Shown: positions 4,401-62,248 of the stretch, piece by piece | Layout of the letters: each line of letters starts with the position of its first letter | Numbering within the stretch: position 1 is the first letter of the stretch | NCBI GenBank assembly: GCA_009859145.1 | Contig: VRVR01000011.1 | Location: 140,292-204,291, forward strand | DNA: 64,000 nt | Origin: Andalucia godoyi And28 | Lineage: Eukaryota > Protista > Jakobida | Direction of reading: 5' to 3' | The notes under the pieces: model-generated | Seen by the model: only the letters and a program-made list of their open reading frames with translations | Database searches by the model: none | Told to the model about the DNA's origin: nothing | Made by a program: the position numbers and the translations under genes

Positions 4401-4853
4401 ATAATCGCAACCTGTCTTTCCAAGATGCCGAGAACCAAGAAACCCGTTGGTTCTCCCTCGTCGGAGACGGAAAGCAAGGACAAGAAGAAGATCGTCAGAC
4501 GGCAACTTGTTGCGCAAGCTGGTAATGATCAAAAATCACGAAGATGTGGTTGATTTGCGTTCGGAATGCGCTTTCTTTCAAGCCAGAGGACAAGAAGGGG
4601 CAATGGCAAAAGCGTCGTCAGGCCCGATGTGCAACGCCGCCGCCGACATTCTGTTTCTTCCAACGTTCATTTTTTTGAATGCTGAACCAATTGGGAAATG
4701 TGTTGGTTGCGATAGCTCTTTGATGCAGAGCAATCTGCATTGAAGAGTTGGTGCTCGCTCTAAATATTTAAATAAATAAATAAATAAATAAATGTGGGTT
4801 GGATCTGTCGCTTTGCCCGATGACCAATAATGATTCATGTTTTGGGCGAGCGG
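4401..4853 (+). mobile_element. Family X element, copy X1: internally deleted, probably TnpB/Fanzor-derived
   Basis: Homologous to 49562-49931(-) and 61975-62167(+): shares GAGAACCAAGAAA, TGATGCAGAGCAATCTGCATTGAAGAGTTGGTGCTCGC and the end CATGTTTTGGGCGAGCGG. Degenerate ORF MPRTKK..KKKIVRRQ and frameshifted RPDV/NAAADIL. Left boundary approximate. Confidence 0.65.
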
Positions 4854-5453
4854 AAAAGTGATCAAAAATGTCAATAACCTCCGCTCCAATCTCCCCGATT
4901 ACAGGATATCCAACGATGTGTTCAATAATTGAAAAACATCATAAAGAATTTAAAATGCTAGTCCTAAACACTGCTAGAAAAAACGCCAAGGCTTCTTTCT
5001 TGTATGCAGATATACATATGAATATATTAGTATACAATATTAGTATTATTATCCTTCCGTTCTTTCTGTTTCTGTGTTTACGCGACTTCTTTAATTTTAA
5101 GAAAGATACTCTTCTGTGTCGATCTTCTTTAACAGCAACCAACGACGGTACTTCTTCTTTTCTGGTGTTTCTTCGTGCATTCCCCCCTTTCTCTCTCTCT
5201 TCCCCCAACCTCTTCTGAACGTCGTACTTGCTGCGTATGCCGATTCAACGTAGACGGAGAAAAAGGAACCATACATAGGGAGCAGCAGGCTGTCTAGGGT
5301 TTTATCTTGCAGCTTGCATAGTTACCGACTTTGTGCGAGTTTCCCATAGACAAGCCGTGTCATTTAACAGATTTTTTTTATTTTCAGCGTTTTCCCTCTT
5401 CTCGTTCTGCTTGTCTTTCACTTCCTGTCGGTTGTGCTTGTTGCTGGTGATCG

Positions 5454-31900: not shown

Positions 31901-34900
31901 TTGTGCAGCAATTGACTGGGATGGGTTTCACGGAAGTGCAAGCGCGCAATGGTCTCCGCAATGTCGAATACGGAGATGTTGTGGAAGCCATGGAGTGGAT
32001 TCTTTCACATCCGTATCAATCTTTGGAGGAATCTTCCGAATCAACCCGTCCAGAAAGTGCGCTGGAAGCCAGCGCGATTTCAGAAACATCCGCAAATTTG
32101 TCTGCGGACGTTGTGGTCCCAGAGGGCGCTTCTGCGCTGCCATTGGTTGTGGATACACAAGGGACAGCGACAGGTTCTTCTGCCCCCTTTGTTGACGAAC
32201 TTGTGCAAACGTTGAATGCTACGATAATGTCCGTGTTGACGCGAGAAGACTCCGTTCACGAGTCGCGGACCGCATGTCTCTTGCACCTTGCAAACTTCGT
32301 TTCGGGAGCAATGAATAAGGAGAGCTTGCGATCCTCAATTGACGTGGCCTCGTTTTACAGGAACATTCAGTTTTGTTCCGTGCTTGCTAACAAGTCTGCT
32401 GTATTCAGAGCGACGCTTGGTGAAGAGTTTTTCAGTGCCATGCATCACAGTTTCGTGAATATGCTGACTCAAGCAAAGTATTCTGATGACCTTGCCCACG
32501 ATGTTGCTTCAATTCTTCTGCTCCTCCGCTGGGATCCGTCGGGAGCTCATCAATTAGCCGTTTTTGCGAAGACTGCGTTTTCGGTGTTTTGTTCGTCGAT
32601 GATCGTTGTCTATGCATTCCTCCAAAGTGCTGTGCATGTCTGCCGACAGAGCTTTTCTGACGCAAATCTTATTGGAGAGGCGATCAGCCTGGATGCTATC
32701 TTTTCAGTCCCCCAGATCGCAAAATTTGACCGGTTCCCAGTTCTATTAAGCGCATTGCTTCGATTGACATCCGAAGATGAGGTAACTCTGCAGCAATCCA
32801 TGGAATTTGAAATTCGACGAATTGTCACCGCCTCCAAAGCAAAGGTGTTTGCGGACCTGGCCACGTTTTCTTCGCTTGCATCCCGTTCTTCCGTGATTTT
32901 TGAGAAGGCTCTTCTGCGGACGTGCATTGCGGTCGAAGGAGGAATCCGACTGAAGACTCGAGATGAAGTAGAAGGTCCATATTCAAATCTTTCATGTAGT
33001 AGACGGTTGAGAGTTGTCGTCGAAAGGTTGATTTCCTTCCTCGTGGATTCAGTGGCTGCTCAAAACAGCACTGTGGTCTTGCAGCCGGAGGAGGTATGTG
33101 TGTTGTTGTCGGATTTCGTTGCAGCTTATCCTGTTGCAGGCCCTTTGGTTGTGTCTGACGAACGAATATTTTCGACATTATTTTCTCTCAATTTGACGGA
33201 TCGTCACGTTGGCAATCTGTTGGTTCTGCTTTGCGGTCGCACTCCCAGCGTTACACTTTCCCATCTGTTGCTTTTCCTGAAGAGTGCGACAGACGTTGAT
33301 TCGATTTCCAAAGTCTTATCATTTCTTGTAACATTGATCAATCCGAAGCGGTCTTCCAGTTTCCGGTCCAAGGATTTGCTGTATTTGATGATTTTCCTCG
33401 GTTTTCCATCGGTGCTGATTTCGCTGCCGCAAAAATGCAATTTTTCGGTGCCAATTGTGAACACGTTGACTCGATGCTTATCTGTGCTGACCAAACCAGA
33501 GAATGTTCAAGTATCTCTTGTTAAGAACCGTGAAAAGTACGAGGCGTTGCTTGTTCAGGGAAGGAGGAGGGAGAAGGTGCATTTCTCGAATGAGGAGGGC
33601 GAATTTTCTTTTGTGCACGAGCCCGGCGAGGATTCCGATTTTTCGGCCATCAATGACAGAAGACTGGACAGCCCGGTGGAAGCAGGGTCTGCAGAAGAAG
33701 ACTCCGGCAACGACGAGGAGGGCGAGGATACAGACGGGAACGGTGGAGTAGAAGAAATTACAATTCTTGACCAGGACGGAAACCCTATAGACATCTTGGA
33801 CGAATCCAGTGATGATGATTCGAACACTGATTCGAACGATTCTGTTTCCGATGGAGAGAATTCCGACGAGGATCTTGATGGAGATGGAGAAGGAATGGAC
33901 ACGAGTCAGGATATCATTCTGCAAGAAGTCGACCGCGGAGCCCATTTCCCGGGAGACGACATTGGAATTCAGTCAGATGATGATCTCAATGGAGATGACG
34001 ACGACGACGATGATGATGATGACGACGACGATGACGAAGAAGAAGATGGAGATCGAAACAGAAATGAGCATGGCTCTGCGGATGTCGATAACATGGACCG
34101 TGCCATGGAGGACGTTCTTGCAGATCTGGGTGAGAATGGGGATCCTACGCAAAGTGGCGATGCTGCGTATGTTTCGGAGGGTGCATATGATGACGTGCAT
34201 ATGGAGTTCGTCCTTGAAGACGACGATTTGTTTGACTTCGCGATTGAAAGTCCTGCGGACATTTTAGATTTGTGGGATAGCGAAATCGGTTTCCAGCGCC
34301 GTCGATCGCAGCCCGATCAAGAGTTTGCGCCTGCCATCAACGTTGCAGAACAGGAGATTGGGTTTCCACGGTCTTATGATCCTGCGTTAGCGTCTATTTT
34401 GCTTGATGAGGATGTTGATCCAACGCCAGTGAGAGTCGATGTGATTGGAAACAGCGACATCCGAAGATCGCAATCAATGGATGTTGATGACATTTTGGAG
34501 CCACCCACTCCTGCTGTTGCGGCTGGTGCTTCCGCGTCCACGATAGAGGCTGATGGAAATTCTGCGCTGCCCTATGAGCGATCTGCCGTTGTGCATCCTT
34601 TCCTTACTCGATTGTCGGCAGTAGAGAATGAACGCGCACGCCGCGCTTCGCAACCTCAAAGTGGCCGTGCTGCTCCGGCAATATTTTTCGAAGACGTCCT
34701 CTTGGATCTACACAGCCGTCGTCCGATTGCGGGTCGAAGCAATCGACCTCACACGCACGTGGATGCGTCTTCTGTTCGCTGGTCGTATGGTTTGGAGGAC
34801 GATGCAGAAACCTCTTCCTCTCCAGACGTTATGCCCTTGCTGGAGCGAGTCTTTTCGCAGATGTCTCATGAGCATCCACACCCACCTTCTCAGCCCCAAC

Positions 34901-39304: not shown

Positions 39305-39445
39305 GCGTACATTTGGTCCACTAACCACGGATAAGTATCACTGATTACCCATAATCAATGCTGCAACCCAACAACATGCATAACATGACTGGGAAGGGGT
39401 AGGCCCCAACACGCCCCTCGGCATGAGAGACGTTCTTACGAGAGA
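39305..39445 (-). ncRNA. Putative Fanzor omegaRNA scaffold (copy A)
   Basis: Conserved 3' region with GCCTAC (39399-39404) and a 9-bp hairpin (39339-39360), ending at the element boundary; overlaps the ORF 3' end as in TnpB/Fanzor loci. Confidence 0.65.
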
Positions 39446-39990
39446 TGCAGATGTTGCGCGTGCCGTTCCAATCGCGGTCGATCGTGCAATTGCATGATGG
39501 GCAACAAAACACCTTGGCGATCGTCGAAGACAGTTTGTCGGCAGCTGCTCTGCGGAGCGCATCGTCATGCACGTCGCGGGCAACGAAGCAGGTGGTGATG
39601 GCTCGTTCGACGTCGGCGAGGCAGTGTAGTGGTTTGATATTTATCCGCTGTAGTGGGTACATATCGCCAAATGTCGACACATAACGTTTGCAGCTTGGTT
39701 GCGCCCATGCAACCGTTGAGGTGAATCTGTGCCTTTCCTGTCTTTTGTGTTTCAATAAATTGGAGACCTTTTTCTTTATTGGTTATTGCCGTTACAGCAG
39801 TACATGCGATGGGAGCCGGCGTGGATGCTGCGGATCGTTCCTGGCGGCGGTGGAGATGTCATGGGTCTTGCGCGGCGTTGCGGGCGTGACGTACATGGTG
39901 CGCTGCACGGACAGTAAAATAAAGATATGAAATGAGCGTCGCTGTGCGAGAATGCAACGCGGCTGTGTGTTTAGAGGGATTTCATGAATC
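39305..39990 (-). mobile_element. Family A Fanzor2/TnpB-derived non-autonomous element, copy A (686 bp)
   Basis: Encodes KVFCCPSCNCTIDRDWNGTRNI (zinc-finger half plus RuvC-III). Left ~80 bp and right ~140 bp are shared with 53334-53568; ends at AATGTACGC. Confidence 0.88.
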
Positions 39991-40314
39991 CGCATCAGCA
40001 CCCATCAAATGTGCTATTTGAGTTGCACATTTGCGAGAGGAACTTGAGAATGCGTCCCCTACTTGAGTACCGAACTGCCGGGCTTGGACAAAGACGCCTC
40101 AAGTGGACATGGAAAACGAAAAAACTGGAAAAAAAGATCCGGCAGAGCGATTTACTTGGAGCAACATGGAAACTTTTTTAGGTTGCGGGGTAGTATCGCG
40201 AGAAGTGACAGCGGTGTTTTGTTTAATATTTTTTGTGTGTTTTAATTAATTTTGGTTTGACAAGGAGGCGTTACGAGAAGGAAGAAAACTGCACTCATCT
40301 GATTTACTGTATGC

Positions 40315-41055
40315 ATGTTCCGATTGCCAAGACCGTTAACGATCCCAACTGTTTTTCTTGTGCGCCGTGTTGTTTCGAGGAGTACCTGTGTTGCAAGATC
40401 CATGACTGATGATAGTGCTGCGCCGACTGCTGCGCAGGATGTGAAGAAATCAAAGATCTACACTCGGACGGGTGATCGTGGCACGTCGGGTCTGTTCAAT
40501 GGCACCCGAGCATCCAAGGACAATATGTTCTTTGAAGCACTTGGCACAACCGACGAGGTGAATGCGGTCCTTGGCGTTGCTCGCGAATACCTCCAATCAC
40601 CAATATCCAGTCTGCCGACCTCTGCTGTGCTTGCGACTCTCGACGAGCAACTTTCAGTGATTCAGTCGCGGCTTTTGGATCTCGGATCAGCCATCGCGAC
40701 ACCCATTCCAACCTCGGATAGCGATCTTTTGAAAAGAGTGCAGTTTCCCCATGCCCACGTCGCGGATATTGAGAGCTGGATCGATGTGTGGGACTCGCAG
40801 TTACCACCTCTCACCAACTTTATTCTTCCATCCGGCGGTCTTGCATCCGCTCATTTGCACCATGGTCGCACTGTTTGCCGACGAGCAGAGCGAAGTGTCG
40901 TCCAGCTTGTCCGCGAAGACCAGATTCCTGCAGTCGTTCAAATCTACCTAAACAGACTCTCCGATTACCTCTTTGTCGTGGCCCGCATCGCCGCAAAGGA
41001 ACACGGTCGACCAGAACACGTATACAAGAAGCAAATCGCCGATACTTCACAATAA
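40315..41055 (+). CDS. MMAB: Cob(I)alamin adenosyltransferase, PduO type (mitochondrial)
   Basis: KIYTRTGDRGTS, GTTDEVN, FILPSGG..LHHGRTVCRRAER, YLNRLSDYLFVVAR. Confidence 0.96.
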   Translation: MFRLPRPLTIPTVFLVRRVVSRSTCVARSMTDDSAAPTAAQDVKKSKIYTRTGDRGTSGLFNGTRASKDNMFFEALGTTDEVNAVLGVAREYLQSPISSLPTSAVLATLDEQLSVIQSRLLDLGSAIATPIPTSDSDLLKRVQFPHAHVADIESWIDVWDSQLPPLTNFILPSGGLASAHLHHGRTVCRRAERSVVQLVREDQIPAVVQIYLNRLSDYLFVVARIAAKEHGRPEHVYKKQIADTSQ

Positions 41056-41119
41056 ATGCACTTCTCGCACGATCCACCGTTGAGCACACATGATGTTGTT
41101 CCCAAGCTGAACTGTCGTA

Positions 41120-41608
41120 TCAGACTTCACCAGCAGCAGACGACGCAGACACAAAAGTTTGCCGCGCTGCCCTTCGTCTTGCACATTCTGCCTTTTCCAA
41201 AGCATCATCGATGGATCGCAAATCGCAGTCCAAGATGTGCTTCCAAAGCAAAGCCGAATGTCGTAAAAGAGACACGGATGCGTTGAATAGCGCTTGCGGA
41301 TCCGCGAAGCAGACGCTAGATGACCGGACAGTCGAGAGTGTGGTGGAGAGCACGAGAACCAAGGTTGAATCAAGAGACCCGATACGCTCGAGCGTTGCAT
41401 CGAGATCGCGGTCGCATGGACCCAGAGCCATCGCACGCGACTCCGCCTGCCGTAGCTCGGATAGCTCCGAGACAGACTCCATCGACGATGCAGCAACTGC
41501 AGACGATACCGCAGGAACAAGATGCGAAAGACTCGCCAAGTGATTATGAATGTCCATACATTGCGTCCGGTACTGCACAATCCATTTTCGCAAACTCGAC
41601 TCGGTCAT
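41120..41608 (-). CDS. Helical protein, possibly C1orf109/CK2-substrate-like
   Basis: ORF 41120..41797; coding-like from MTESSLRKW. Family resemblance is weak and from memory. Confidence 0.55.
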   Translation of the reverse strand: MTESSLRKWIVQYRTQCMDIHNHLASLSHLVPAVSSAVAASSMESVSELSELRQAESRAMALGPCDRDLDATLERIGSLDSTLVLVLSTTLSTVRSSSVCFADPQALFNASVSLLRHSALLWKHILDCDLRSIDDALEKAECARRRAARQTFVSASSAAGEV

Positions 41609-42067
41609 CTGTACGCAAAGGCCTATGTCATTGATCGAGCACGTGACTCCTGTGTTTCCTTGGTTTCCTTGGTTTTTTGTTTTTTTTTTGTTTTTGTTTT
41701 GTAGTAGTAGTAGTAGTAGTAGTTGTTGTTGTTGTTCATCAATTTGCATCCTTTCCCCGGAGCAAAAGATTGCGATTTCGAAAAAAAATGAACTCAAGTG
41801 GACTCACTTATTGTAGTGCCACGGTTTCTTAAGGGTTTTGCAGCGTTGGACGTCTTTGGTGAGCTCACATTGAGGTCGATTGTTCCCGATTCCCCAATAG
41901 CATTTCCGTTCTTATTTTATTTATTTTATTTGTTTTGTTTCGCAGGTTTTCTGCAAAGATTGACGATCTTTTTCTCGGTTTTTTTGGGGGGGTTTTTTTC
42001 TCCTGCGTCTTCCTTCTTTCCCATCCACATTGTTGCTTGTGCGACCGAGAGAGTTGGTGTTCCTACT

Positions 42068-44590
42068 ATGGCGGCTCGAGCTCTGCGAAAACAGCGTGAA
42101 ATTGCAGAAGGCGCAACTACATATACATCAAACAAGAAGCGATCAAAAGACGCAGATGTTCCAAATGTGCCTGTTGCAGAGGAAGAAACATTGTCCATTT
42201 CACCGGAAGAAGATGATATGGTTACTGCACGCGGAAGCACGTCGTTGTTTTCGCTGTTGAGAAATCAGGAGGATGAACTAGTGGACGTCAGCGAAGACGA
42301 AAGCGAGAATGACGCAGAAGGAAGCAGGACGGAGTCATTAACTGCAAAGTCAAAGAAGAGCGATGGTCACAGGAAGAATAAGAAGGGTAGCGAAAAGGGA
42401 AAGGACAGGGGCAGGGGCAGGGGCACAGGGGTGAAGCAGGAGCCAGGAAAGAGAAAACAAGGATCTGCACGTCCTTCTGTCGAGGAAGCCTCTCAATGGA
42501 GCGCTGGGAATCGAAGTACTGCAAAGGATGCCGATGACACGGATGACGCCCTGCAATTGGGGGAAGACGGTTCCGACGATGAGGAATTCGACAGGGTGCT
42601 GAGCTCGATGAACATGCATGCTGTTGGCGGGGCACCAGGTCTGGGGCAAGCTGGTGGGGAGATCGGTGTTGTCAAGTTGGCGACATCGGTGTCGATCGAT
42701 TCGAGATATCTGTATCCCGAGAAGGAATTGAAATCCAAGTTTGGTGATGCAAGTATCGGTTTTCGAGAAACATCGGAAGCTGCGAATGAACACCTCCCTT
42801 CGGCGATTTTGTATGGATCGACACTGGAGGAAACCATCGCAATGCGTAGGATCCTCAATGATGCGCATGCGCCCCAGAAGCGACGGGGCGTCATGGTGCG
42901 GAACCCAAAGTTTGTGAGGCCCAACATGTCTTGGCCGGCGCTGCTTGAGCACGGATTCCGATTTGTGAATTTGAGTAGGTTGTCTGGCTCGCGGAAGGAC
43001 GCTTCTGCATCCTTTGACATCTCGGACACAGAAATGACAGAAATGAAGGCTCGGTGGGATCGTGACGAGCTTCTGCGGTCTTTGATTGAGAAGGACAAAT
43101 CGTGTGGGTCCATGGACCAGCTGCAAGTGTGGACCATGATTCCATCTGCAGAGACGAAGCGGCTGCAGCCGGCGTTGGATGAGTGCATTGCGAGTGGAGA
43201 TCCCAATGCTCTTGTTACGTTTGTCTCCATGCACCAGCCGTACAATGTGGATGCGAATCTACGCATTGCTTCGTTCTTGTCCACCGTTGCGGCGCAAGCA
43301 TCGGATGCCATTCCATTCATGGACAGGGCCCTTTTGGCACTGGAGTCAGCTGCGTCCGCGTCAAGATTTGATGTCTGCTCTCGACCGCTACGATCTGTGC
43401 TTCCCTATGACTGCTTCCCCAATAGCAGATCGTTTCACATTGCGCTCTGTCGCCACGCGCAATCTCTTGCGAAGCGAGCTTGTGTGAAAACCGCGCTCGA
43501 GGTTTCAAAGTATCTTTATATGCTGGATCCGTCGGACCCCACGTACGCACTGCTTTCGATGGATTGGTATGCAATGCGTGCTTCGGCGTTTGATTTTATT
43601 GTCGATTTTGAGCGAGATGTGTTGCGTGCCAGATATGCCCCTCTGTCGTATCTTCCCAACTGGGTATATGCAGTTCCATATGCGACTTTCAAGCTGCTTT
43701 ATGCGCAAAGGAAACCGCAAGGGGCTGCAGTGGACAGCGACAGCAGCAGCTCCAACGCCAACGACCTGACGTTTGCGGGTGCCAGATCTGCACTTCGTCG
43801 GGCATTGATATTGTATCCCTACGTATTTCACGTGTTTCTGCAATCCTGCGTGCCATCGCTGTTCACACGTGAGGCAGATCGCGAGGCGTTCAAAAAGCTT
43901 CTTTCTTCCGTTCTCTTTGATCGTGTTGTGTCTCGCGAATGGATGCTGTTCCAGCGTATTGTATCTTCATTTTCTTCTCGAATTCTCGATGCTTGGAAGC
44001 GGGATGAAGAGTGGCTTTCTTTCCTCGTGCAAGAGGCGCTGTCCGTGTCTGTCGAATTCGACAGCTATCAGCACACTCGCCGCCAGGGCTCTCGTCATTC
44101 CGGGACCTCAGTACTCGATCAGTATCTGGAGGAGCGCACTGTACTCGAGAAAGACATCGAGGCCTGCTCCGTCCTCTTCCTCCGTTATGCGACGGTCACG
44201 TCCGACTCGGTGCAGGCTCATTTCGAGCCAGTTCCAGAAGATCGATCCGTCCTCTCTCTCTTAGAACGCGGCCGCAACTCCGCGTCTCTCTTCTCCCCGT
44301 CATCCTCTGGGAATCCGACCGATACGGGGTCGTCTTCTGCAGCGCACGACGTCAGGATGGCCGGCTCCACTTCCACGGAAACCGACAGAATTGCGTCCGA
44401 ATGGATCCACTCGGAGCTGCACGGAACAGGGACCGGCGGAGTGCGAGAGTCCGTTCGACGGGGCATCTCGTTGATTCGCGCGTTTGCTTCGTCCATGATG
44501 CCATGGAACACCATGGACGAGCGAGCGGTGCACGCCTTGGCTCTGTTTCACGAGTTCCAACGGCAGTTCCATACTCGACTGTATGAGTAA
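42068..44590 (+). CDS. TCF25: TCF25/Rqc1 ribosome quality-control factor (DUF654)
   Basis: N-terminal MAARALRKQ, QPYNVDANL, DRALLALE, KRACVKTALEVSKYLYMLDPSDP, YLPNWVYA, ALRRALILYP. Confidence 0.9.
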   Translation: MAARALRKQREIAEGATTYTSNKKRSKDADVPNVPVAEEETLSISPEEDDMVTARGSTSLFSLLRNQEDELVDVSEDESENDAEGSRTESLTAKSKKSDGHRKNKKGSEKGKDRGRGRGTGVKQEPGKRKQGSARPSVEEASQWSAGNRSTAKDADDTDDALQLGEDGSDDEEFDRVLSSMNMHAVGGAPGLGQAGGEIGVVKLATSVSIDSRYLYPEKELKSKFGDASIGFRETSEAANEHLPSAILYGSTLEETIAMRRILNDAHAPQKRRGVMVRNPKFVRPNMSWPALLEHGFRFVNLSRLSGSRKDASASFDISDTEMTEMKARWDRDELLRSLIEKDKSCGSMDQLQVWTMIPSAETKRLQPALDECIASGDPNALVTFVSMHQPYNVDANLRIASFLSTVAAQASDAIPFMDRALLALESAASASRFDVCSRPLRSVLPYDCFPNSRSFHIALCRHAQSLAKRACVKTALEVSKYLYMLDPSDPTYALLSMDWYAMRASAFDFIVDFERDVLRARYAPLSYLPNWVYAVPYATFKLLYAQRKPQGAAVDSDSSSSNANDLTFAGARSALRRALILYPYVFHVFLQSCVPSLFTREADREAFKKLLSSVLFDRVVSREWMLFQRIVSSFSSRILDAWKRDEEWLSFLVQEALSVSVEFDSYQHTRRQGSRHSGTSVLDQYLEERTVLEKDIEACSVLFLRYATVTSDSVQAHFEPVPEDRSVLSLLERGRNSASLFSPSSSGNPTDTGSSSAAHDVRMAGSTSTETDRIASEWIHSELHGTGTGGVRESVRRGISLIRAFASSMMPWNTMDERAVHALALFHEFQRQFHTRLYE

Positions 44591-45936
44591 ACGAAAAGAA
44601 AACAAGACCATTCAGCATGTTCAGTGTGTATGAGCAATCTGAGCGAGCAGATGGGAACCCGAAGAAAAAAAGGGGGAGGGAAGAAGCAAAGTCCGAGGGG
44701 GCCGCGTGCTTCTTTTTTTGGTATGTTGAACCTCGGCACTCGCACGAATTGGCAATCGAAGACAGCAAAAGAAGAAAAGACAGTCGAAGAGAACCAGAAG
44801 AGCCAGAATCAAAAAAAAGTGCGTGGCTGGGAAAAGATGTCGCTTTCCTCTCCTCTCCATGATTCATCGAATCTTCCCATAATTTTTTTGTTTGCTTGGG
44901 GGAGGGGGGCCAAGTGGGCAGCGAGGGGAACATCGCCCAAAACCGGAACGGAGTGTGTTTTGCTCCGACAGCAGTTCAACATGGAAGCCGACATGTCGAC
45001 CGAAAAAAGTGTTGTTCCGACACCAGCTGATTTTGACAGATTTCCCGCAAATCAACGAAAACAAAAAAAGAAGGAGAAGAGAGAAGTTGATGCCCATCGC
45101 TCGAGACTCGAGACTCGAGACTGGACCTCTTTTGAGTCGGACATAAGTATTTGGACACTATTTTTTCGTTTTGGCCAGCTTCTGTTCACATCTTCGTTTA
45201 TGGTTTTCTCCTTATTTTCTATTTCTTTCTGCATTGCTTCCTTTCATACTTCAGTTTCAGTCTCTGTTGCTAGATGCCTTTGGTCCTTTCCCTCTGCTCT
45301 TGTTTCTTCATCATCTCATAAGCACTTTTTGTTTTAAGTATAGTTTTTTTTCATTCAAAAAGAAAAGAAGAAGAAAAATACTTTGATTACCAGTCGTGTA
45401 GAGAATCCATCAAGACGGGAACCGAATCTTCTTTCCTCTTCTTCTTGTCAAAAAGAGAAAAAAGAACAACAGCAACAAAATACACTTCACCAAAAACAAA
45501 CAGGTTTGGGTGAGGGGAAAACTCGCGGATCTGTGTGTTTTCCTCGGTTTTTTCCCCAATATTTTTGTTCGATTTGGCTTTTGCTAGTTTTTGTCAGGTT
45601 TTTCATCTTCATTTTTGTATTGCGTGCTTTATTTTCTTTTTTGTTTGGTTTTCTTTGGTGTCAAAATATCAACAACCGGTGTTCGAAGTTTTTGTCCTTT
45701 GTGTGCGTGCGTGTGTTTGTTTTTGTTTGTCTGCAGGTTGGTTGGTAGAGTATACATAGTTTTTTGGGCGTATTTTTTGTGATTTTGATTTGAATTTTGG
45801 TGTTTAGCATCGTTTGCTCTGTACCTAATATTGTCTGTGGGTTTCGTTTGATTGTTGTAGTATTTTTTAATTGTTTGTGTGTGTGGGTGAGACAGAAGAG
45901 AAGAGAGAGAGAGAGAGAGAGAGAGATATTTGAATC

Positions 45937-48867
45937 ATGAGTGATCGACCACAGAACGATTCTTTATTCTCAGTAGCATTTCCATCGTCATCATCGTCGT
46001 CGGCGTCGGCGTCGTCGCTGCAAATGCATCTGCCTGGAGTCTCGAGGTCATCGGACGGCGGTCTTTCTGCGAACGCCGCCGCTCCTTTTGATGCTTTCGG
46101 ACACCCTGTTCCGATGCCTGGCGTGTACTCGCCATTCGGATCACGCAATCCGTCGCCAACTGTTGCGTCTCCATCGTCTGTGTCTTCAAGCTCCAACTCT
46201 TATCGGAACAACATTAACAACCGCCACTCTGCGCCGGCTTCGTCTGTGGCTCCAATTTCAGACGAGATTGCAGTGTCGTTGGAATATCTTAATTTGCGAA
46301 ACCCGCGCTATTCGCTCCAGCAGCAACATGAGGCATCGACGGCTTCTGCGCTTTCACAAATGTTTCAAGGCAGTGGTGCTGGTCAACAAACTTTCAGAAG
46401 CAGCAACAGTCGCCGCTCGGGTGTGTTCAATTCGCTGGCCGAGCACGAATTGGACAGTGGAAAGTTTCATCCTCAGTCCCTGCAGTTCCATATTCCTCAG
46501 CAACAGTCGCTTCCACAACAACAACAACAACAACAACAGTATTCACACATTTCGAACAATGGTGGATCGTTCCACTTGCCACAAATGCATGCGCAGTCTC
46601 ACGGTCCAGGAAATGGAAATGGATATAATGGCACGGGCTTGTCCTTGTCGTCCTCATCCTCTCCTACAATGACTGTGGCAACGTCCTCGGGTTCTTCCAC
46701 GACCAACCTATCATCGCTGATGACCACGGCCTCGGCTATTCTGGCGTCAGCCACGGCTGCTTCTTCATCCCAAGTGTTCGCAACTTCTATGGCGACAAGC
46801 GGTAACGGAAGTAATAATAGTAACAGTGTCAATACCCACCACAATAGTAGCAGTAGTATCAGTAGTCACAATAGTGGTAACAGTAATAGCGGCGGCGGCG
46901 GCGGCGGAAATACTTCAAATGCTTCGGCGGTCTTCCCGTCGCGCACACTGTTTATCAGATTGCCGGATCCGCCAAGTCGGATTCCTAGTGACTCAGAGTA
47001 TGCTTCATTGTTCGCATCTTTTGGTTCCTTGCGGGGGTTGTACACGGAATGGAGGCAGCACGGATTTTTGCTAGTGTCATATTTCGACATTCGATCGTCC
47101 GAGCGCGCCTTGTCTGCGGTAATGGAGCGACTGGATCTTGCTGCTGAAGTTAGGTTCTCGCTTCCTGTAACGTTGTTCGACGAGGAGAGGCAGCAGGGGA
47201 CGCTCGTTGTGTTCAACTTGGACCCTCAGATTCCAGCTGATGATCTGATGCGATTATTTACGCAATTTGGACCGGTTCGCGAGGTGCGGAGCACTCCAAA
47301 CAAGTCGCACCAGCGATTTGTAGAATATTTTGACACACGGAATGCGGATCGAGCCATGCAAGAGCTCAACAAGAGAGAGGTATGTGGAAGGAAATTGAAA
47401 ATTGAGCCTTCGCACCCCGGTGGATCCAGAAAGGAACACATGGAACAGTTTAACAGGATGCTCCTGGGACTACGGCAAAGCCGTTCGGCGCCGTCGTCGC
47501 CTCGGAACAGTATTGTTTCATCTGACGTAGCCCCTGGTACATCTGGGCTGTGCAATAGTACTGGCAATGGAGGTGGTAATCTACAACAGCAACAGCAACA
47601 GCATCAACAGATTCAGGCTCTCGCAGCTCATTTTTCGAGTTTGCTTGCTGTGTCGTCGGCAGCTCAAACATCCAGCCAGTACTCTTCTCTTCCAGCTTCT
47701 CAATCTCAGTTCCAACAGTATCCCCAGTTCCACCATCATCATCATCATCAACAACAACAACAACAACAACAACAACAGCAGCAGCAGCAGCAGCAACTTC
47801 ATACCCAACACGTTCATCCCAGTTTGGTTTATCCAAATCGACATTCGAACCCGAATACTCGAACAGCATTTCCATATGGAGTTTCGTGGGGTCTTTCAGT
47901 GGACGTCGCTCCTACTCTTCTTTCTCCATCTTCTTCCAACGGCTCGTTGCCGCTGGGAAACTTTGGAAGTGGAAGCTCTTTGTCTGCAGCTGGCGGATTG
48001 CTTTCGAACTCCGGTCCTAGCGACATTTCAAAGTTGCTTGCGACAGGTATAATGATCCCCAGTGCTTCGAGTACTCGGTCTGCTTCGCCCTCTGGCGATG
48101 ATCAGCAAATGTATGCTCCAAATACGACGATCAATCCGGTTTTTGGTGCCAATCTGCCTTCTGCTGTTGGACAGCAGGTGCAGCAGCTTCAAAATTCTTC
48201 TAGCCACATGTTGAATTCCTCAAATCCGTTGTATTTACAATCTCCTTCTCACTATCAACAGCACCATGTGTCGATGCAGGGTGGCCAGCAGCATCATCAC
48301 CATCACCACAGCCACCATCAACCACAGGTGCATCATCATTTCCAGCAGCAGCAACAGCACGGAAGTCTTGCGCTATCGTCTGGCGGAATGATGCACTCCA
48401 GCCAGCCACGAACTCCATCGCCGCAGTTCCAAATACAGATGGACCAAGTGTTGTGCGGGAACGACATTCGCACGACGGTTATGCTTCGTAACATCCCGAA
48501 CAAGTACACGCGAGACATGTTGTTGGAAGACTTGGATATGCAATTCCGATGCACGTTCGATTTTCTTTATCTTCCCATGGATTTCCAGAATGATTGTAAC
48601 ATGGGTTATGCGTTTCTCAACTTCATTGCACCGACAACCATTGTGCCATTCTTCCAAGCGTTCCACGGCCGTCGCTGGAATCGATTCAATTCTGAAAAGA
48701 TTGCAGAAGTGACGTACGCGAAAATTCAGGGAAAGCAAGCGCTTATCGAGCACTTCAAAAAGTCCAATGTTATGCTCCAGAACACCACCTACCGCCCATT
48801 ACTATTCCATTCCACTGGTCCTCAACAAGGTTTTCCTGAGCAGTTCCCCGGGAATCTTCTGAAATAG
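45937..48867 (+). CDS. MEI2: Mei2-like RNA-binding protein (two RRMs plus C-terminal Mei2-type RRM)
   Basis: PSRTLFI, SYFDIR, QGTLVVFNLD, FVEYFDTR, RTTVMLRNIPNKYTR, FDFLYLPMDFQNDCNMGYAFLNF; poly-Q/H/S tracts. Confidence 0.93.
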   Translation: MSDRPQNDSLFSVAFPSSSSSSASASSLQMHLPGVSRSSDGGLSANAAAPFDAFGHPVPMPGVYSPFGSRNPSPTVASPSSVSSSSNSYRNNINNRHSAPASSVAPISDEIAVSLEYLNLRNPRYSLQQQHEASTASALSQMFQGSGAGQQTFRSSNSRRSGVFNSLAEHELDSGKFHPQSLQFHIPQQQSLPQQQQQQQQYSHISNNGGSFHLPQMHAQSHGPGNGNGYNGTGLSLSSSSSPTMTVATSSGSSTTNLSSLMTTASAILASATAASSSQVFATSMATSGNGSNNSNSVNTHHNSSSSISSHNSGNSNSGGGGGGNTSNASAVFPSRTLFIRLPDPPSRIPSDSEYASLFASFGSLRGLYTEWRQHGFLLVSYFDIRSSERALSAVMERLDLAAEVRFSLPVTLFDEERQQGTLVVFNLDPQIPADDLMRLFTQFGPVREVRSTPNKSHQRFVEYFDTRNADRAMQELNKREVCGRKLKIEPSHPGGSRKEHMEQFNRMLLGLRQSRSAPSSPRNSIVSSDVAPGTSGLCNSTGNGGGNLQQQQQQHQQIQALAAHFSSLLAVSSAAQTSSQYSSLPASQSQFQQYPQFHHHHHHQQQQQQQQQQQQQQQQLHTQHVHPSLVYPNRHSNPNTRTAFPYGVSWGLSVDVAPTLLSPSSSNGSLPLGNFGSGSSLSAAGGLLSNSGPSDISKLLATGIMIPSASSTRSASPSGDDQQMYAPNTTINPVFGANLPSAVGQQVQQLQNSSSHMLNSSNPLYLQSPSHYQQHHVSMQGGQQHHHHHHSHHQPQVHHHFQQQQQHGSLALSSGGMMHSSQPRTPSPQFQIQMDQVLCGNDIRTTVMLRNIPNKYTRDMLLEDLDMQFRCTFDFLYLPMDFQNDCNMGYAFLNFIAPTTIVPFFQAFHGRRWNRFNSEKIAEVTYAKIQGKQALIEHFKKSNVMLQNTTYRPLLFHSTGPQQGFPEQFPGNLLK
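47734..47796 (+). repeat. (CAT)n(CAA)n(CAG)n coding poly-His/poly-Gln tract in the Mei2-like gene
   Basis: Directly visible. Confidence 0.85.
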
Positions 48868-49071
48868 GTTTTTGTTTTTGTTTTTTGCTTTCGTTTTCAT
48901 TTTTGCGAGTTTTGTTTGTTTATTGGAGACAGGTCAATTGCACGTCATTTATCATTATTGCCAACATGTAGTTCTATCCATTTCTATCACTTATTTCATC
49001 ATGTGTTTTTTGTTTGTTGTTTTTGCTTTTTGTGGCTTTGTGCGTATGCTCCCGACACTTCTCCTTGTTTC

Positions 49072-49370
49072 GCCTACATTGTCCGTTAAACATGAGCTAC
49101 TCATTGCTGACAACCCATACATGCACTCTTGCAATCCGAACAGAATGTGAATTCAATTCAGTAGGCGGCGGGCCCCGGTACGCCGAGGCGCTCCTCAAAT
49201 GGATTTTTTTAATTAAATTTATTGTTTGTACGCACCACCATTCCAGTCTCGGTCCAGGCGGGCTGATGTGAATGGGAAAAAAGACGAACGGAAGAATAGC
49301 ATTGTCTGAAATTTGTGGGTGAGTGGGGGTAAGAGTGGGTTGTGAAAGCGTAAGAAGTTTGGGGGACATA
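49072..49370 (-). mobile_element. Family A element, copy D (degenerate)
   Basis: Minus strand encodes LDRDWNGGA (49237-49254), then GCCTAC (49161-49166), TGCATGTATGGGTTGTCAGCAATG (similar to A and B) and terminal CAATGTAGGC. Left boundary uncertain. Confidence 0.75.
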
Positions 49371-49561
49371 TCTTGAAAAAGAGATGGAGTGTGGTTTGCT
49401 TACATCAAGGCAAGAGAATGTCATTGCCTGAATGATGACCCATTCTTTCATTCTGCTGTTAAAAAAACACTAATTGTGTCTTTTACATGTTTAATATAAT
49501 GCTGCTTTGCGAGCGACGGCTATCGAGCCTGTGACTGTTGCATTACGAAGCCGCTTTCTTG

Positions 49562-49931
49562 CCGCTCGCCAAAAACATGGATCATTACTGATCATCGGCT
49601 AAGCTGTCACGGCAGACAGATCCAAGTCACATGTTTTGTGTTTATTGGAGGGGCGAGCACCAACTCTTCAATGCAGATTGCTCTGCATCAAGGGGTCATC
49701 GCTTCTTCTTCTTGCTCTCGGCCTCCGACGAGAGGGGATCAACGGTTTTCTTGGTTCTCAGTGTTTGTTGGAGAGATCCCTCTTTGGAGCCATGATATGC
49801 TTTGTCTTTGATGAAAGATGCTGTTTGAGGGCTCGATTATAATAATGAGAGACAAACAGAAGATGGTAGAGAGAAGGGAAAATGTGAAAGAATGAAAGAA
49901 ATTTATAGACTAGACTACGATAGGAAAATCG
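49562..49931 (-). mobile_element. Family X element, copy X2 (370 bp)
   Basis: Both ends match 61975-62167; internal ORF remnant (MAPKR..RTKKTV..ESKKKKR) matches X1; TATAAAT near the left end. Confidence 0.75.
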
Positions 49932-50028
49932 CGTCTCCATAGGGTTAGATGAACCAGCTCCTGGTATGAGGTTGCTTGTTCAATGTTTCATACAACAAAA
50001 AAAAACCGTCAACCATCAATCTTTCGAC

Positions 50029-50440
50029 GCCTACATTATGCACTGAACATGCATATCTTTTCGTAGATATGCATACTCAGTCTTGCATCCCGTTGCCGGG
50101 AAGGGGGTAGGCCCCAACACGCCTCACGGCATTCTTCAGATAGATGTTCCGCGCTCCGTTCCCAATCTCGATCAATCGGTGAGCCACTTTCTCAGCGTGG
50201 CACGTTGCTCCTGAGAAGGGTGCATTTTGATGCTGACGGCCCTAGCAGCAGGCGCTTTCGTGTCCTCAGTTGCAGCGATTGATGTACCTGGAGATACGAG
50301 AGGAAGAGGCGGCAGGCGTAGTGACACGTGGTCTCTTAGGAGGTCTGCGGGACCTAGGAGGCCCTGTATCGGGCGGCGTAGGCGTAGGCGAATGCGTCAT
50401 CCCAGCGCGCTCACGCCCATATTTGAATTAATAAAGTGGA
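50029..50440 (-). mobile_element. Family A Fanzor2-derived element, copy C (N-terminal HTH fused to C-terminal RuvC-III)
   Basis: MTHSPTPTPP..PPKRPR (NLS-like), frameshift, RAVSIKMHPSQEQRATLRKWL (HTH_OrfB-like), deletion, IDRDW/NGARNIYLKN; then GCCTAC, a 16-bp hairpin (50043-50080) and AATGTAGGC. Left boundary uncertain. Confidence 0.88.
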
Positions 50441-50686
50441 ACCAACGAATGATAGAATAGATGGCTACGGATGTTGCGTTAAAGAGTGTCAGGGCCTGTG
50501 TCACCGGCTGAATTTTGGCCGAGCGTGTGTAAGCACGAATTCCCCTGTGAAGCAAACGTGCTGGTGTCGGCCAGTATTGACCGTGTCTGTTTATGTACAC
50601 TTTCCTTCTGTATGCATGACAATAACGTGTTTTTATTTGACGGTCCTTTCTCATACCCAAGTACATACAGACCTCCACAGCTGCAA

Positions 50687-53182
50687 ATGGGAGTTGAATC
50701 TGCGGCGTTGTTTGATGATGCAGTGCTGGACTCGGATTTGAAGCAGTCTCTGTCTCAATTCACAGAACAGACTCGGAAAGCTGTACTGCTCGAAAGAACC
50801 CTTGAAGAATGGGTTGCGCAGAACGAGACGCACGCATGGCCGTGCATTGCTGTTCGGATTGCGAGCGCGCTGAAAGGGAGATTCCTCGTCACGTTGAAAT
50901 CGGCATCTGCGAATCAGTCGAATTCACCATTGTTCAGCTCACGACGAAATGGTGCGTCGCGGTTTGGCGTTGGTGAGATGGTGAAGCTGACGCTGTCTCT
51001 AGGTTCAGTGTCGAGCTCTGTAGGAAGTGCGAACGATAACGAACAGGAGTGGAAAGGTGTTGTTTCGGCGTGTCATGAAAAGTTTATCCAGGTGCTGCTG
51101 GACGACGTCTCGGACGCTCTCTTTGCGATCACGAATATTGATGCGTTTTCTTCTTCGTCGTCCGGTGGTGCAACCAACAGCATGTTGTCTATGGGTTCTT
51201 CCGGAGCAGGAACTTCCTCTTCCTTAACTTCCTCTTCGTCTGGAGACAATGGTGGTCATGGAGACTTTTCTTCTGCTGGAAAACAAGGCGAAGCGGTCTT
51301 GAAGCTTTCAAAGATTCCTAATGACACGACGTACAAGCGAATTTCGCGGACCGTTGACAAGCTCGGCGAACCGGGCATGTTTGGATCAGATCATCCTGTC
51401 GTGGACTGCTTGTATGGCGATCGGGTTCCTTCCGAGTACTCGCCGCTGGACGGTTCGCAGTCAGAGCACATGACAACTGTCAGTGAATGGTTCAACACGA
51501 ATCTGAACTACTCGCAGAAGCAGGCTGTTGAATACGCGTTACGCCAAAAGGACATTGGGGTTATCCTAGGACCTCCAGGAACAGGGAAAACAACAACACT
51601 TGTCGAAGTCATTCGCCAGTTGCTGTCGAGAGGCAAGCGCGTGTTGGTCTGTGCTGCATCGAATGTTGCTGTTGACAATATTGTGGAACGTCTTGCAGCA
51701 TCAAGGTCTCTCATCCGAATGGTCCGACTTGGACATCCTGCTCGACTGCTGCCCAGCGTCGTTCCATACGCACTGGATGCTGTGTTGGACCGTTCCTCCG
51801 GCGGAGATGTTGTGGCGGATGTGCGAAAAGACATGGAGGAGAACATTTCAAAAATGAAGAAAGCAAAATCGTACTCAGACCGAAGGCAGTTGCGGCAAGA
51901 GTACAGACAACTTCAGAAGGAACTCAGAGTGAGAGAGAGAAAGGCGCTGGTGGATGTGGTAATGGCTGCCCAGGTCGTTTTGGCGACCAATACTGGATCT
52001 GACGAAAAGCTTGTTCGAATGCTGGAACAGGTCGTTGCCAAAGAGCGAAACACTTCCGGACTTCTGACGCACCCATTTGACTATTGCATTTTGGATGAAG
52101 CTGCACAATCGTTTGAGATTTCCTCCTGGATTCCCATTCTAAAGGCACGGTCCGTGATTCTTGCTGGGGATCACCACCAGCTCCCACCCACCGTGTTGTG
52201 CGCGAATCACACGCTTCCGAATGCCGAAAGCTTCAAGTTACTCATGCGTAAGAATTTTGAAGGACGGTTGTTGGCAAGTGCCGAGGTCGTGGAGTACGGT
52301 CGGAGATTGTCCCAGACATTATTCGCAAAGCTGTACAAGAAATTCGGCGGCCACATGCTTGAAGTGCAGTACCGAATGCACGAGGATATCATGAGATTCT
52401 CAAGCCGAGAATTCTACGGCAACAAGCTTGTAGCAGATCCCTCTGTTGCCGGTCACCGTATCAGCGAGGACTTGCCTTCTATCGTGTTTGTTGACACGTC
52501 AGATGCGGGGTATCAGGAAGGGGCCGATCAGTACGACTCGAAGTACAATCTTGGGGAAGTGCAGATCGTCGCGAAGTACTGCGCCGAACTCATCGAACTG
52601 CACGGCATACCGGAACAAGACATTGGGATCATTTCTCCGTACAATGCCCAGATTGATTTGATTCGTGACGCGGTTCGGAATTACTATGCAGGCGGTATCA
52701 AAAAGCCAGCCTCCGCGATCGCTTCATCGTCCGCGAAACCATCGTCCGCGAAGGGGTCCGGTCCCCCCAGTTCCAAAACGGGTGGAAAGGCCAAAGCCAG
52801 CAAAGGTTCCAAAGGGCGGGGCTCCAGCAAATCCTCTGAAGCTGCTGGAGGGCTGGTCAAAAAATCAGTCGATGCTGACTTGGAAATCGACGATGAGGAT
52901 CTCGGTTCTGGGTTTTTGGATGTGGAGATTTCTACTGTGGATGGGGTGCAGGGGCGCGAAAAGGATGTGATTCTGATGTCACTTGTTCGATGCAATAGTG
53001 TTGGAGATGTCGGGTTCTTGGCTGACAAGCGTCGCTTGAACGTTGCCATAACTCGCGCCCGCAGGCATCTTTTCGTCGTTGGTGATGCTAATACCTGCGT
53101 CCAAAATGAATTCCTGAAACGATTGATACAGTACTGGGAGGAAGTCTCGGAATACAGAACTGCCGGAGAGTTTGATTTGTAA
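50687..53182 (+). CDS. IGHMBP2: SMUBP-2/IGHMBP2/Hcs1-like SF1 helicase
   Basis: LNYSQKQAV, GPPGTGKTTT, ASNVAVDN, DEAAQ, GDHHQLPP, QYRMH, STVDGVQGREKD, RRLNVAITRAR. Start placed at MGVESA. Confidence 0.92.
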   Translation: MGVESAALFDDAVLDSDLKQSLSQFTEQTRKAVLLERTLEEWVAQNETHAWPCIAVRIASALKGRFLVTLKSASANQSNSPLFSSRRNGASRFGVGEMVKLTLSLGSVSSSVGSANDNEQEWKGVVSACHEKFIQVLLDDVSDALFAITNIDAFSSSSSGGATNSMLSMGSSGAGTSSSLTSSSSGDNGGHGDFSSAGKQGEAVLKLSKIPNDTTYKRISRTVDKLGEPGMFGSDHPVVDCLYGDRVPSEYSPLDGSQSEHMTTVSEWFNTNLNYSQKQAVEYALRQKDIGVILGPPGTGKTTTLVEVIRQLLSRGKRVLVCAASNVAVDNIVERLAASRSLIRMVRLGHPARLLPSVVPYALDAVLDRSSGGDVVADVRKDMEENISKMKKAKSYSDRRQLRQEYRQLQKELRVRERKALVDVVMAAQVVLATNTGSDEKLVRMLEQVVAKERNTSGLLTHPFDYCILDEAAQSFEISSWIPILKARSVILAGDHHQLPPTVLCANHTLPNAESFKLLMRKNFEGRLLASAEVVEYGRRLSQTLFAKLYKKFGGHMLEVQYRMHEDIMRFSSREFYGNKLVADPSVAGHRISEDLPSIVFVDTSDAGYQEGADQYDSKYNLGEVQIVAKYCAELIELHGIPEQDIGIISPYNAQIDLIRDAVRNYYAGGIKKPASAIASSSAKPSSAKGSGPPSSKTGGKAKASKGSKGRGSSKSSEAAGGLVKKSVDADLEIDDEDLGSGFLDVEISTVDGVQGREKDVILMSLVRCNSVGDVGFLADKRRLNVAITRARRHLFVVGDANTCVQNEFLKRLIQYWEEVSEYRTAGEFDL

Positions 53183-53333
53183 ACGCCGCCGTCGCCACTT
53201 ATTGCGATATGATGAAGCAATCTAAAGCGCACGTTTAAACAAAAACACTGCCACGCGCCATGCGAATGCGCATGCGTTTGCTATGTTAACAACTCCGTTC
53301 ACACGATGTCCCGATTTCGTTTCGCTCCATTTT

Positions 53334-53568
53334 GATCATGAAATCCCTATAAACACGCCGCCGCGTTGCATTCTCGCACAGCGACGCTCATTTCATATCT
53401 TTATTTTTACTGTCCATGCAACGCGACATCTATCTTAAGAACGTCTCTCATGCCGAGGGGCGTGTTGGGGCCTACCCCCTTCCCAATCATGCTATGCATG
53501 TTGTTGGGTTGCAACATTGGTTATGGGTGATCAGTGATGCTTATCCGTGGTTATTGTACAATGTAGGC
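53334..53568 (+). mobile_element. Family A element, copy B: 235-bp ORF-less (omegaRNA-only) derivative
   Basis: Left ~80 bp match 39990-39910 and include TATAAA; right ~140 bp match 39445-39305; only IYLKN remains of the nuclease C-terminus. Confidence 0.88.
53430..53568 (+). ncRNA. Putative Fanzor omegaRNA scaffold (copy B)
   Basis: GAGGGG/CCCCTT stem with GCCTAC (53470-53475) complementary to terminal GTAGGC (53563-53568); 9-bp hairpin at 53515-53536. Confidence 0.7.
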
Positions 53569-56968: not shown

Positions 56969-58106
<1,138 letters not shown>

Positions 58107-58420
58107 TTTTCTTCTTTCAGTGCCCTGACTTTTCCCCCCAGCCCCGCAGACAAGAATGAAGAAACACTCGTGGGAACTTGGAAAACGTGTCGTGCACCAG
58201 CGCTGCAAGTGGGTTTTCACACATACACACTCTCTCACACAGTCAAGCACTGTATCAGCTTGATGCTTACCAGTCCCGAAATGGGTCACGTTTTGGAGAA
58301 AACACTATGCACGTGGAAATTCGTTTCCCTTTTCTTTTCTTTTCTTTTCTTTCTATTCTATTCAGAGAGACAGAGAGAAAGAAAGAAAGAAAGAAAGAAG
58401 GAGAAAAGGTGGTATTGGAA

Positions 58421-61974: not shown

Positions 61975-62167
61975 CGATTTCCTTACCGTAATCTAGTCTA
62001 TAAATTTCTTTCATTCTTTCACATTTTCCCTTCTCTCTACCATCTTCTGTTTGTCTCTCATATTTATAATCGCGCCCCTCAAATAAACACAAAACATGTG
62101 ACTTGGATCTGTCTGCCGTGACAGCTTAGTCGATGATCAGTAATGAAACCATGTTTTTGGCGAGCGG
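61975..62167 (+). mobile_element. Family X element, copy X3: 193-bp ORF-less derivative
   Basis: Left end (CGATTT..CTATAAAT..) and 3' scaffold (AAAACATG..CTGTC/GACAG..CATGTTTTTGGCGAGCGG) are nearly identical to X2, with the ~180-bp ORF remnant deleted at a TCG..CCCTC microhomology. Confidence 0.75.
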
Positions 62168-62248
62168 AAAGAGGGACAGTTTCGCGGGAACGCATTTCCT
62201 ATCGCGGATGTTTTTTTAATTTTAAATAAAAAAATTAAGACGATTGTT

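Follow-up and report, generated by a model that had tools for sequence, protein, structure and literature searches.

Five remnants of Fanzor2 elements in the window

The 64-kb stretch of Andalucia godoyi And28 DNA analysed here (contig VRVR01000011.1, positions 140,292 to 204,291; hereafter the window) contains five intergenic repeats of a Fanzor family, designated A to E. The copies descend from Fanzor2/IS607 elements and are remnants of such elements, not Fanzor2 genes; the longest Fanzor-derived frame in any of them is about 60 codons, and stops and frameshifts are present. The five copies are most probably (a probability of about 0.8) decayed non-autonomous remnants of one IS607-type lineage, truncated but with the omegaRNA scaffold kept, and are now fossils. 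All copy counts and within-window searches reported below cover this 64-kb stretch.

An initial annotation of the window had described four copies, A to D, and each was found close to where it had been placed. The count was one short, as a fifth copy, E, lies outside the range of that annotation. The 17-mer GGCGTGTTGGGGCCTAC has three exact occurrences in the window and one with two mismatches, against a chance expectation of 0.07, and the two-mismatch match led to copy E. Copy limits were set by alignment and blastn, which moved the left end of copy D from 49370 to 49311. The copies and their parts are as follows.

39305–39987, minus strand: copy A, a composite non-autonomous element with both ends common to B
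39800–39987, minus strand: left end and tnpA 5' remnant of A (MYVTPATPRKTHDISTAA, then GTIRSIHAGSHRMY past a frameshift)
39577–39620, minus strand: tnpA 3' remnant of A (LADVERAITTCFVARD; blastn to locus L001 tnpA 555–598, 79.5% identity, E 8e-6)
39305–39436, minus strand: omegaRNA-like scaffold of A (GCCTAC 39399–39404; terminal GTACGC 39305–39310, one mismatch)
53336–53568, plus strand: copy B, a 233-bp derivative of an A-like element by internal deletion, resembling a miniature inverted-repeat transposable element (MITE); left end 91% and right end 90% identical to A
53438–53568, plus strand: scaffold of B (GCCTAC 53470–53475; terminal GTAGGC 53563–53568)
50029 to about 50400, minus strand: copy C, a Fanzor N-terminal remnant fused to RuvC-III, scaffold and right end; left limit uncertain
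50029–50138, minus strand: scaffold of C, better preserved than any other in the window (GCCTAC 50107–50112; terminal GTAGGC 50029–50034)
49072–49311, minus strand: copy D, 5'-truncated, beginning in the Fanzor zinc-finger region, then DRDWNG, degraded scaffold and right end
49072–49197, minus strand: scaffold of D (GCCTAC displaced to 49161–49166; terminal GTAGGC 49072–49077)
156–411, plus strand: copy E, a D-like remnant with the same 5' breakpoint as D (CPSC..VQDWNGAHNINWKN with a frameshift), scaffold and right end
287–411, plus strand: scaffold of E (GCCTGC 311–316; terminal GCAGGC 406–411, a compensatory double change; hairpin 2 degraded)

The initial annotation quoted the flanking sequences correctly, and the similarity among the copies does end at AATGTA(G/C)GC. 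It was also accurate in assigning GCCTAC to A, B, C and D and a one-mismatch terminus (GTACGC for GTAGGC) to A, although in D the hexamer is shifted about 5 nt downstream relative to its place in the other copies. It had further reported the peptide DRDWNG, encoded by differing synonymous codons, in three copies. This holds for A and D; copy C carries an extra G (GATCGAGATTGGGAACGG) and reads DRDWER unless a frameshift is allowed. Copy E reads VQDWNG at this position. The synonymous differences fit the divergence of several once-active subfamilies before each decayed, and at least three subfamilies can be distinguished among the five copies (A/B, C and D/E).

Anatomy of the copies

Copy A is comprised of a left end, a tnpA 5' remnant, approximately 170 nt of unassigned DNA, a tnpA 3' remnant, a Fanzor zinc-finger/RuvC-III segment, the scaffold and the right end, in that order. 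The tnpA 5' remnant spans roughly the first 40 codons and is frameshifted. Read directly, its peptide resembles the TnpA N-terminus of the related locus L001 (MFQAPATIRKRYDVSSST..GKIRCLQTAHQRLY) and the start of the A. godoyi proteins P0001 and P0002. The tnpA 3' remnant is also matched by locus L002 (5–46). The Fanzor segment (39515–39390) retains the second zinc-finger half and RuvC-III, and was matched by the Fanzor proteins of loci L014 and L001 in tblastn.

The middle of copy A (window 39640–39800, minus strand) is without recognisable homology. The A. godoyi gene model P0002 lacks it, running from ..HAGFHRM straight into HCLADVERA; the segment may have been inserted, or else removed by splicing in the gene model. 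There was no significant self-similarity inside copy A indicative of a second nested left end or tnpA start.

As the initial annotation had stated, copy B retains only IYLKN of Fanzor; its left end joins directly to IYLKN, followed by the scaffold and the right end. The left-end identity between A (39987–39892) and B (53336–53432) was measured by blastn. Copy C reads PPKRPR, which resembles a nuclear localisation signal, then KMHPSQEQRATLRKWL, then DRDW/NGARNIYLKN. Residues 150–194 of the L014 Fanzor matched copy C at 50315–50181 (tblastn, E 2e-5) and residues 529–562 at 50190–50089 (E 1e-8), and over 83 nt (blastn) copy C is 88% identical to L014, at the 3' end of the Fanzor encoded there.

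Copies D and E align in two blocks by blastn (49311–49268 with 156–200, and 49207–49069 with 277–414). They have one 5' breakpoint in common at two loci with unrelated upstream flanks, and thus were copied after truncation. No left-end similarity was found upstream of either.

A covarying omegaRNA-like scaffold at the right end

The right end of the transposon is a scaffold of ~125 nt, laid out from 5' to 3' as a hairpin ending in GGCGU, a hexamer, hairpin 1, a conserved UGCAA linker, a long hairpin 2, ACAAU and the terminal hexamer. The same layout was present in single-sequence folds of every copy and of the related loci L014, L001 and L006. A covariance model, R1, was built with B, C and L014 only as seeds. 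In L014, L001 and L006, the R1 match begins just after or within the last Fanzor codons and stops where the similarity between copies stops. The model recovered A with 82.4 bits (E 1e-17), L001 with 61, L006 with 41, E with 38.7 (E 3e-7) and D with 26.5 (E 2.5e-4); B and C, both of them seeds, scored 113 and 117 bits. An R1 search of the window returned nothing beyond the five copies.

In the R1 alignment, 90.5% of cells pair, compared to 31–40% in slid controls, and 25 of the 35 pairs change on both sides; none of 500 shuffles reached the observed values. The terminal helix occurs in four Watson–Crick versions, namely GCCUAC/GUAGGC, GCCUGC/GCAGGC in E, GCCUGG/CCAGGC in L001 and GCCUAG/CUAGGC in L006. 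The covariance model run thereby confirmed the GCCTAC/GTAGGC pairing put forward in the initial annotation, and its description of the right end as a structured omegaRNA-like scaffold with a 3' hexamer pairing to upstream GCCUAC stands. The hexamer is located in a loop closed by GGG/CCC (GAG/CUC in L006), and because this short stem flanks it, a nested closing helix and a pseudoknot both fit the data. The unconstrained minimum free energy fold of copy C includes the closing helix.

The sense strands folded better than the antisense strands in every case. Together with the many G.U pairs, this led us to read the structure as RNA on the ORF (open reading frame) strand. The pairs formed were 34/37 in A (9 G.U), 36/38 in B (9 G.U), 35/36 in C, 32/38 in D (10 G.U) and 26/38 in E. 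Folding z-scores were about −5 for C (−5.1), L014, L001 and L006. Copies A (−1.7), B (−1.4), D (−1.2) and E (−0.7) fold no better than shuffled sequence.

There was no Rfam match at gathering thresholds across the whole window, and relaxed E-values over C and D gave chance matches only. A tRNA scan found none.

Assignment to Fanzor2 and intact relatives

The peptide of copy A reads CCPSCNCTIDRDWNGTRNI, a C4 zinc finger followed by a RuvC-III motif. It (..KVFCCPSCNCTIDRDWNGTRNI..) matches Pfam PF07282 (Cas12f1-like/TnpB zinc-ribbon) with an E-value of 1.9e-5 and 25.2 bits, against a cutoff of 26.3. The zinc finger/RuvC-III motif (..CxxC-x(4-8)-D, DRDxNGARNI) is present in A and D, and with a frameshift or substitution in C and E. 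Close protein relatives of the copy A peptide were limited to P0001 and P0002, both A. godoyi hypothetical proteins. P0001 is a deletion product in which ALDPGVRTF (RuvC-I) is joined to CPSCKCTVDRDWNG. A full phmmer scan with P0001 gave 798 TnpB-family matches, typically of 400–700 aa, which carry HTH_OrfB_IS605, OrfB_IS605 and TNB domains. Two of the matches led to the informative contigs L001 and L014.

In all five window copies, the RuvC-I DPG and alternative glutamate regions have been deleted or have degraded. They are present in P0001 and P0002 (ALDPGVRTF), in P0155 (ALDPGVRSF; EEYTTKTCGKC) and in P0006. The published Fanzor signature combines DPG with E-x6-CxxC, in which the alternative glutamate precedes the first CxxC by six residues (Yoon et al. 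2023, PMC10711439), and P0155 carries both parts. P0155 is the intact Fanzor encoded at 406–1719 of L014, a Joint Genome Institute (JGI) metagenome locus that has the DNA string GGCGTGTTGGGGCCTACCCCCTTCC in common with copy C. L001 has a complete Fanzor-type ORF (P0006) with a serine recombinase upstream.

The best solved structure for both P0155 and the extended L014 ORF was the mimivirus Fanzor2 (PDB 9b0l; E 3.6e-26 and 1.3e-26, respectively), a match that takes in part of the N-terminal domain (NTD). Matches to ISDra2 TnpB (1e-7) and Cas12f (about 1e-10) were weaker. The initial annotation was therefore correct in placing the copies in the IS607-derived Fanzor2 lineage, given the PF07282 and TnpB-family matches, 9b0l, the upstream serine recombinase and the tnpA remnants.

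We also considered that the shared sequences arose by chance, are low-complexity repeats or come from a non-TnpB family. Only the shortness of the protein remnants and a Pfam score just below its cutoff speak for this. Against it, the 17-mer is strongly enriched, R1 E-values reach down to 1e-17, and the homology extends to full-length Fanzor loci at both the DNA and protein level. The 798 TnpB-family matches, the tblastn matches to Fanzor and the R1 scores refute this explanation, and its probability is negligible.

In the Fanzor2 clade of P0155, P0006, P0003 and P0004, an acidic residue is present at the canonical RuvC-II position (LLPKFE/LLPSFE) in addition to the alternative E-x6-CxxC position. 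The mimivirus protein ApmFz2 has N at the canonical RuvC-II position.

A P0006 scan of the metagenome found no relative above 42% identity, and one, L006, with a recognisable scaffold. Searches of 5.8 billion proteins with P0006 and P0155 gave no further relative above 55% identity (P0006 itself excepted, against P0155), and, among A. godoyi proteins, only the fragments P0001 and P0002. In viral contigs, there was no match to an exact scaffold 20-mer and none in the P0006 protein scan; a degenerate scaffold pattern gave 14 loci, all with R1 scores of at most 17 bits, which are chance matches. No report of a Fanzor in Andalucia or jakobids was found in the literature searched.

IS607-type recombinase and ends

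The serine recombinase upstream of Fanzor in L001 contains a MerR-like helix-turn-helix (HTH) and a Resolvase domain (64 bits). The arrangement recurs in eight more loci (L002, L004, L005, L007, L008, L010, L011 and L012), where the recombinase again precedes the nuclease. In the window, recombinase remnants are present in copy A alone.

IS607 elements are without terminal inverted repeats and target-site duplication. In A and B, the two complete elements, the left end TCATGAAATCCC and right end ..ACAATGTAGGC were read directly and do not form an inverted repeat. The flanks show no duplication (..GCGGAT / CGACTCC and ..TTTTGA / ACCGTCG). The two copies share both ends at different loci; as in MITE-like elements and in bacterial PATEs (palindrome-associated transposable elements), the ends are kept, the coding sequence is lost and the element was copied after deletion.

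The base after the terminal ..AGGC was scored in eight elements (window 39304, 53569, 50028, 49071 and 412; L014 1758; L001 2029; L006 799). It is G in six, C in A and A in B. The bias may reflect the fixed first flank nucleotide of IS607 crossover sites. The two left ends identified, those of A and B, are too few to define a crossover dinucleotide or a transposon-adjacent motif (TAM).

Origin and decay of the copies

An intact element would have encoded a TnpA serine recombinase, a Fanzor2 nuclease and an omegaRNA of ~125 nt, which would overlap the 3' end of the Fanzor ORF and terminate exactly at the transposon right end. In TnpB and Fanzor2 systems it is established that the RNA runs across the right end into the flank, so that the guide matches the element's own insertion site; the nuclease–RNA complex then cuts the unoccupied or excised site, and recombination restores the element there. 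The intact element would have behaved in the same way, each copy having a guide to its own site. Internal deletions and truncations removed the recombinase and nuclease, with the right end, which is the scaffold DNA, kept. As A and B retain both ends, such an element was moved in trans by TnpA made elsewhere. The retention of the scaffold needs no RNA function, because scaffold DNA is the right end that TnpA needs.

To assess constraint, the base pairs that differ between two scaffolds were compared. Between L014 and L001, 20 pairs were changed, 17 of which are paired in both, with 13 double changes; between L014 and L006, the corresponding numbers were 21, 19 and 14. In the sibling copies A and B, by comparison, six pairs were changed, three are paired in both and there were no double changes, and substitution rates were equal in paired and unpaired columns. 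Copies D and E differ at 20 pairs, with seven paired in both and one double change. The comparison suggests that the scaffolds in the window now drift without constraint, as fossils would.

The initial annotation had proposed that the copies are nuclease-less guide cassettes that could act in trans. Under this explanation they would be working eukaryotic counterparts of PATEs, their omegaRNA would be loaded by a Fanzor of the genome or of an infecting giant virus, and they would protect or spread copies or target other DNA. Bacterial PATEs that encode omegaRNAs requiring TnpB in trans set a precedent (PMC10055086), and other samples contain longer relatives (P0049/L002 and P0155/L014). In addition, the C and B scaffolds are nearly intact, with a 5' half and pseudoknot identical to those of the scaffold beside P0155. 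Several results speak against it. There is no structural constraint between sibling copies, as A/B and D/E diverge without keeping pairs and A, B, D and E fold like shuffled sequence; there is a mismatch in the pseudoknot of A, hairpin 2 is lost from E, and the hexamer of D has shifted. The A. godoyi proteome yielded no intact family member that could serve as the partner Fanzor, only the fragments P0001 and P0002, and neither the scaffold nor the protein had a match in the viral contigs. Within the window the guides have no other target, a search with the five guide-like flanks having returned nothing with fewer than three mismatches in 16. Right-end retention accounts for the retained scaffold, and four different guide-like flanks would be expected of any transposon that has inserted at separate places. 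No evidence was obtained that the copies program a Fanzor in trans, and we consider the proposal unlikely. The decay evidence on A, D and E leaves it possible for B and C only. These two look structurally competent, and their continued transcription and loading in trans by a Fanzor2 of the genome or a giant virus is improbable; if it occurred, it would amount to a serine-recombinase-linked eukaryotic version of the PATE arrangement, with many guide-only elements served by a few nuclease genes.

Some points weigh against reading the five copies as fossils of one IS607-type lineage. The C and B scaffolds are almost complete (35/36 and 36/38 pairs), and that of C is as stable as the scaffolds beside intact genes. 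The constraint test consists of two sibling pairs with few substitutions. The R1-based alignment is fitted towards the structure of its model, although it is borne out by the slid controls and by independent folding. The search covered one 64-kb window, and an intact Fanzor or TnpA could exist elsewhere in the genome. Left ends were identified for A and B and not for C, D and E, whose mobilisation is accordingly inferred.

Overlap of the tnpA and Fanzor reading frames in related loci

Across the full length of the tnpA ORF in L001 and L007, the +1 frame is stop-free and continues into the Fanzor ORF. The overlap spans 42–812 in L001, 238–939 in L007 and 1–540 in L014, and is also present in L010, L011 and L008. 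Codon shuffles predict 3.4 stops for the 257 codons of this frame in L001 (p 0.017) and 8.3 for its 234 codons in L007 (p <0.001), and none is observed in either. The frame encodes a Fanzor N-terminal extension (PFWN..SW.P.ETD..NSWF) whose alignment with the ApmFz2 NTD begins at residue 75; read in +1, VAHRDRL of tnpA gives WPTETD. In L014, the tnpA frame is decayed and the Fanzor frame intact. The Fanzor-frame ATG of L007 lies 10 nt past the tnpA ATG, a spacing that suggests leaky scanning. Judging from the reading frames, the Fanzor2 NTD may have been overprinted on tnpA. No mention of a tnpA/Fanzor overlap was found in the literature searched.

Genomic surroundings

The neighbours of the copies in the window are ordinary eukaryotic genes with long uninterrupted ORFs, and four ORFs of the window are identical to EukProt entries. 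The neighbours encode a HUWE1-like HECT ligase, a Mei2-like RNA recognition motif (RRM) protein, an SF1 helicase, a gamma-tubulin complex protein and a cobalamin adenosyltransferase. Copies A, B, D and E point to the 3' end of a convergent gene, and co-option as cis-regulatory or 3'-untranslated region (3'-UTR) RNA elements of neighbouring genes was weighed. The right end of E is separated by 15 nt from the stop of ORF 426–2471 and that of B by 79 nt from the gamma-tubulin complex gene stop; copy D lies 205 nt from the Mei2-like gene. However, the neighbour genes are unrelated to each other, the copies diverge neutrally, and 3' intergenic DNA is where a compact genome tolerates insertions. Co-option is very improbable.

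A second, unrelated intergenic repeat was present at 49557–49931 (between C and D), 61975–62172 and 4430–4856. The 62-kb copy is 93–95% identical with an internal deletion, and the 4.4-kb copy is 72–83% identical. The window also has long (CT)n and (CAA/CAG)n/(GAT/GAC)n microsatellites at 57946–58107, 47731–47797 and 33994–34052, some of them within long ORFs.

Significance

The copies add a documented Fanzor2/IS607 lineage in a jakobid nuclear genome. The lineage brings a covariation-supported omegaRNA model without an Rfam counterpart, as well as natural compensatory pseudoknot changes. It also gives an order of decay in a eukaryote, in which the nuclease and recombinase go first and the right end with the scaffold persists. 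If guide-only copies were to act in trans, Fanzor copy-number and target counts in eukaryotes would change; as it stands, the evidence favours fossils. Derivatives that have lost all protein and keep only a guide have a described precedent in the bacterial IS200/IS605 PATEs. The Fanzor N-terminal extension and tnpA overlap in the related loci may be the more original lead.

Comparison with known systems

Fanzor2 in IS607-type elements is represented by ApmFz2 of Acanthamoeba polyphaga mimivirus (PDB 9b0l; PMC11832414; Bao and Jurka 2013, PMC3627910). The intact relatives share with ApmFz2 the DPG of RuvC-I, E-x6-CxxC, the C4 zinc finger and DRDxNGARNI. They also have tnpA upstream, and their N-terminal extension can be aligned with the NTD of ApmFz2. 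In both, the omegaRNA overlaps the 3' end of the ORF, and its 3'-terminal nucleotides pair with sequence further upstream in a pseudoknot. Unlike ApmFz2, the window copies are without a nuclease, their scaffold is ~100 nt from the 5' strand of the pseudoknot to the end, compared to 205 nt, and the host is a jakobid, not a giant virus or mollusc. Protein identity is low (E 1e-26), and an acidic residue is kept at RuvC-II (LLPKFE).

In the ISXfa1/IS607 TnpB reRNA, compensatory mutations confirmed the pseudoknot (Yoon et al. 2023, PMC10711439). The system described here has the same three stem-loops and the same pseudoknot of guide-adjacent nucleotides with an apical loop, here through natural covariation, and the first right-flank nucleotide tends to be fixed in both (here G in 6/8). 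ISXfa1 differs in being bacterial and in having a known GGG TAM and GG crossover, whereas only two left ends are available here.

Protein-less, PATE-like derivatives of IS200/IS605 still encode omegaRNAs (Meers et al. 2023, PMC10055086). Like these, the window copies are short and non-autonomous, keep their ends and a guide-RNA gene, and would require a transposase and nuclease in trans. The PATEs are bacterial, depend on a Y1 (HUH) transposase and reside in genomes with many intact TnpBs and expressed omegaRNAs. The copies in A. godoyi, known from sequence alone, belong instead with a serine recombinase in a eukaryotic host.

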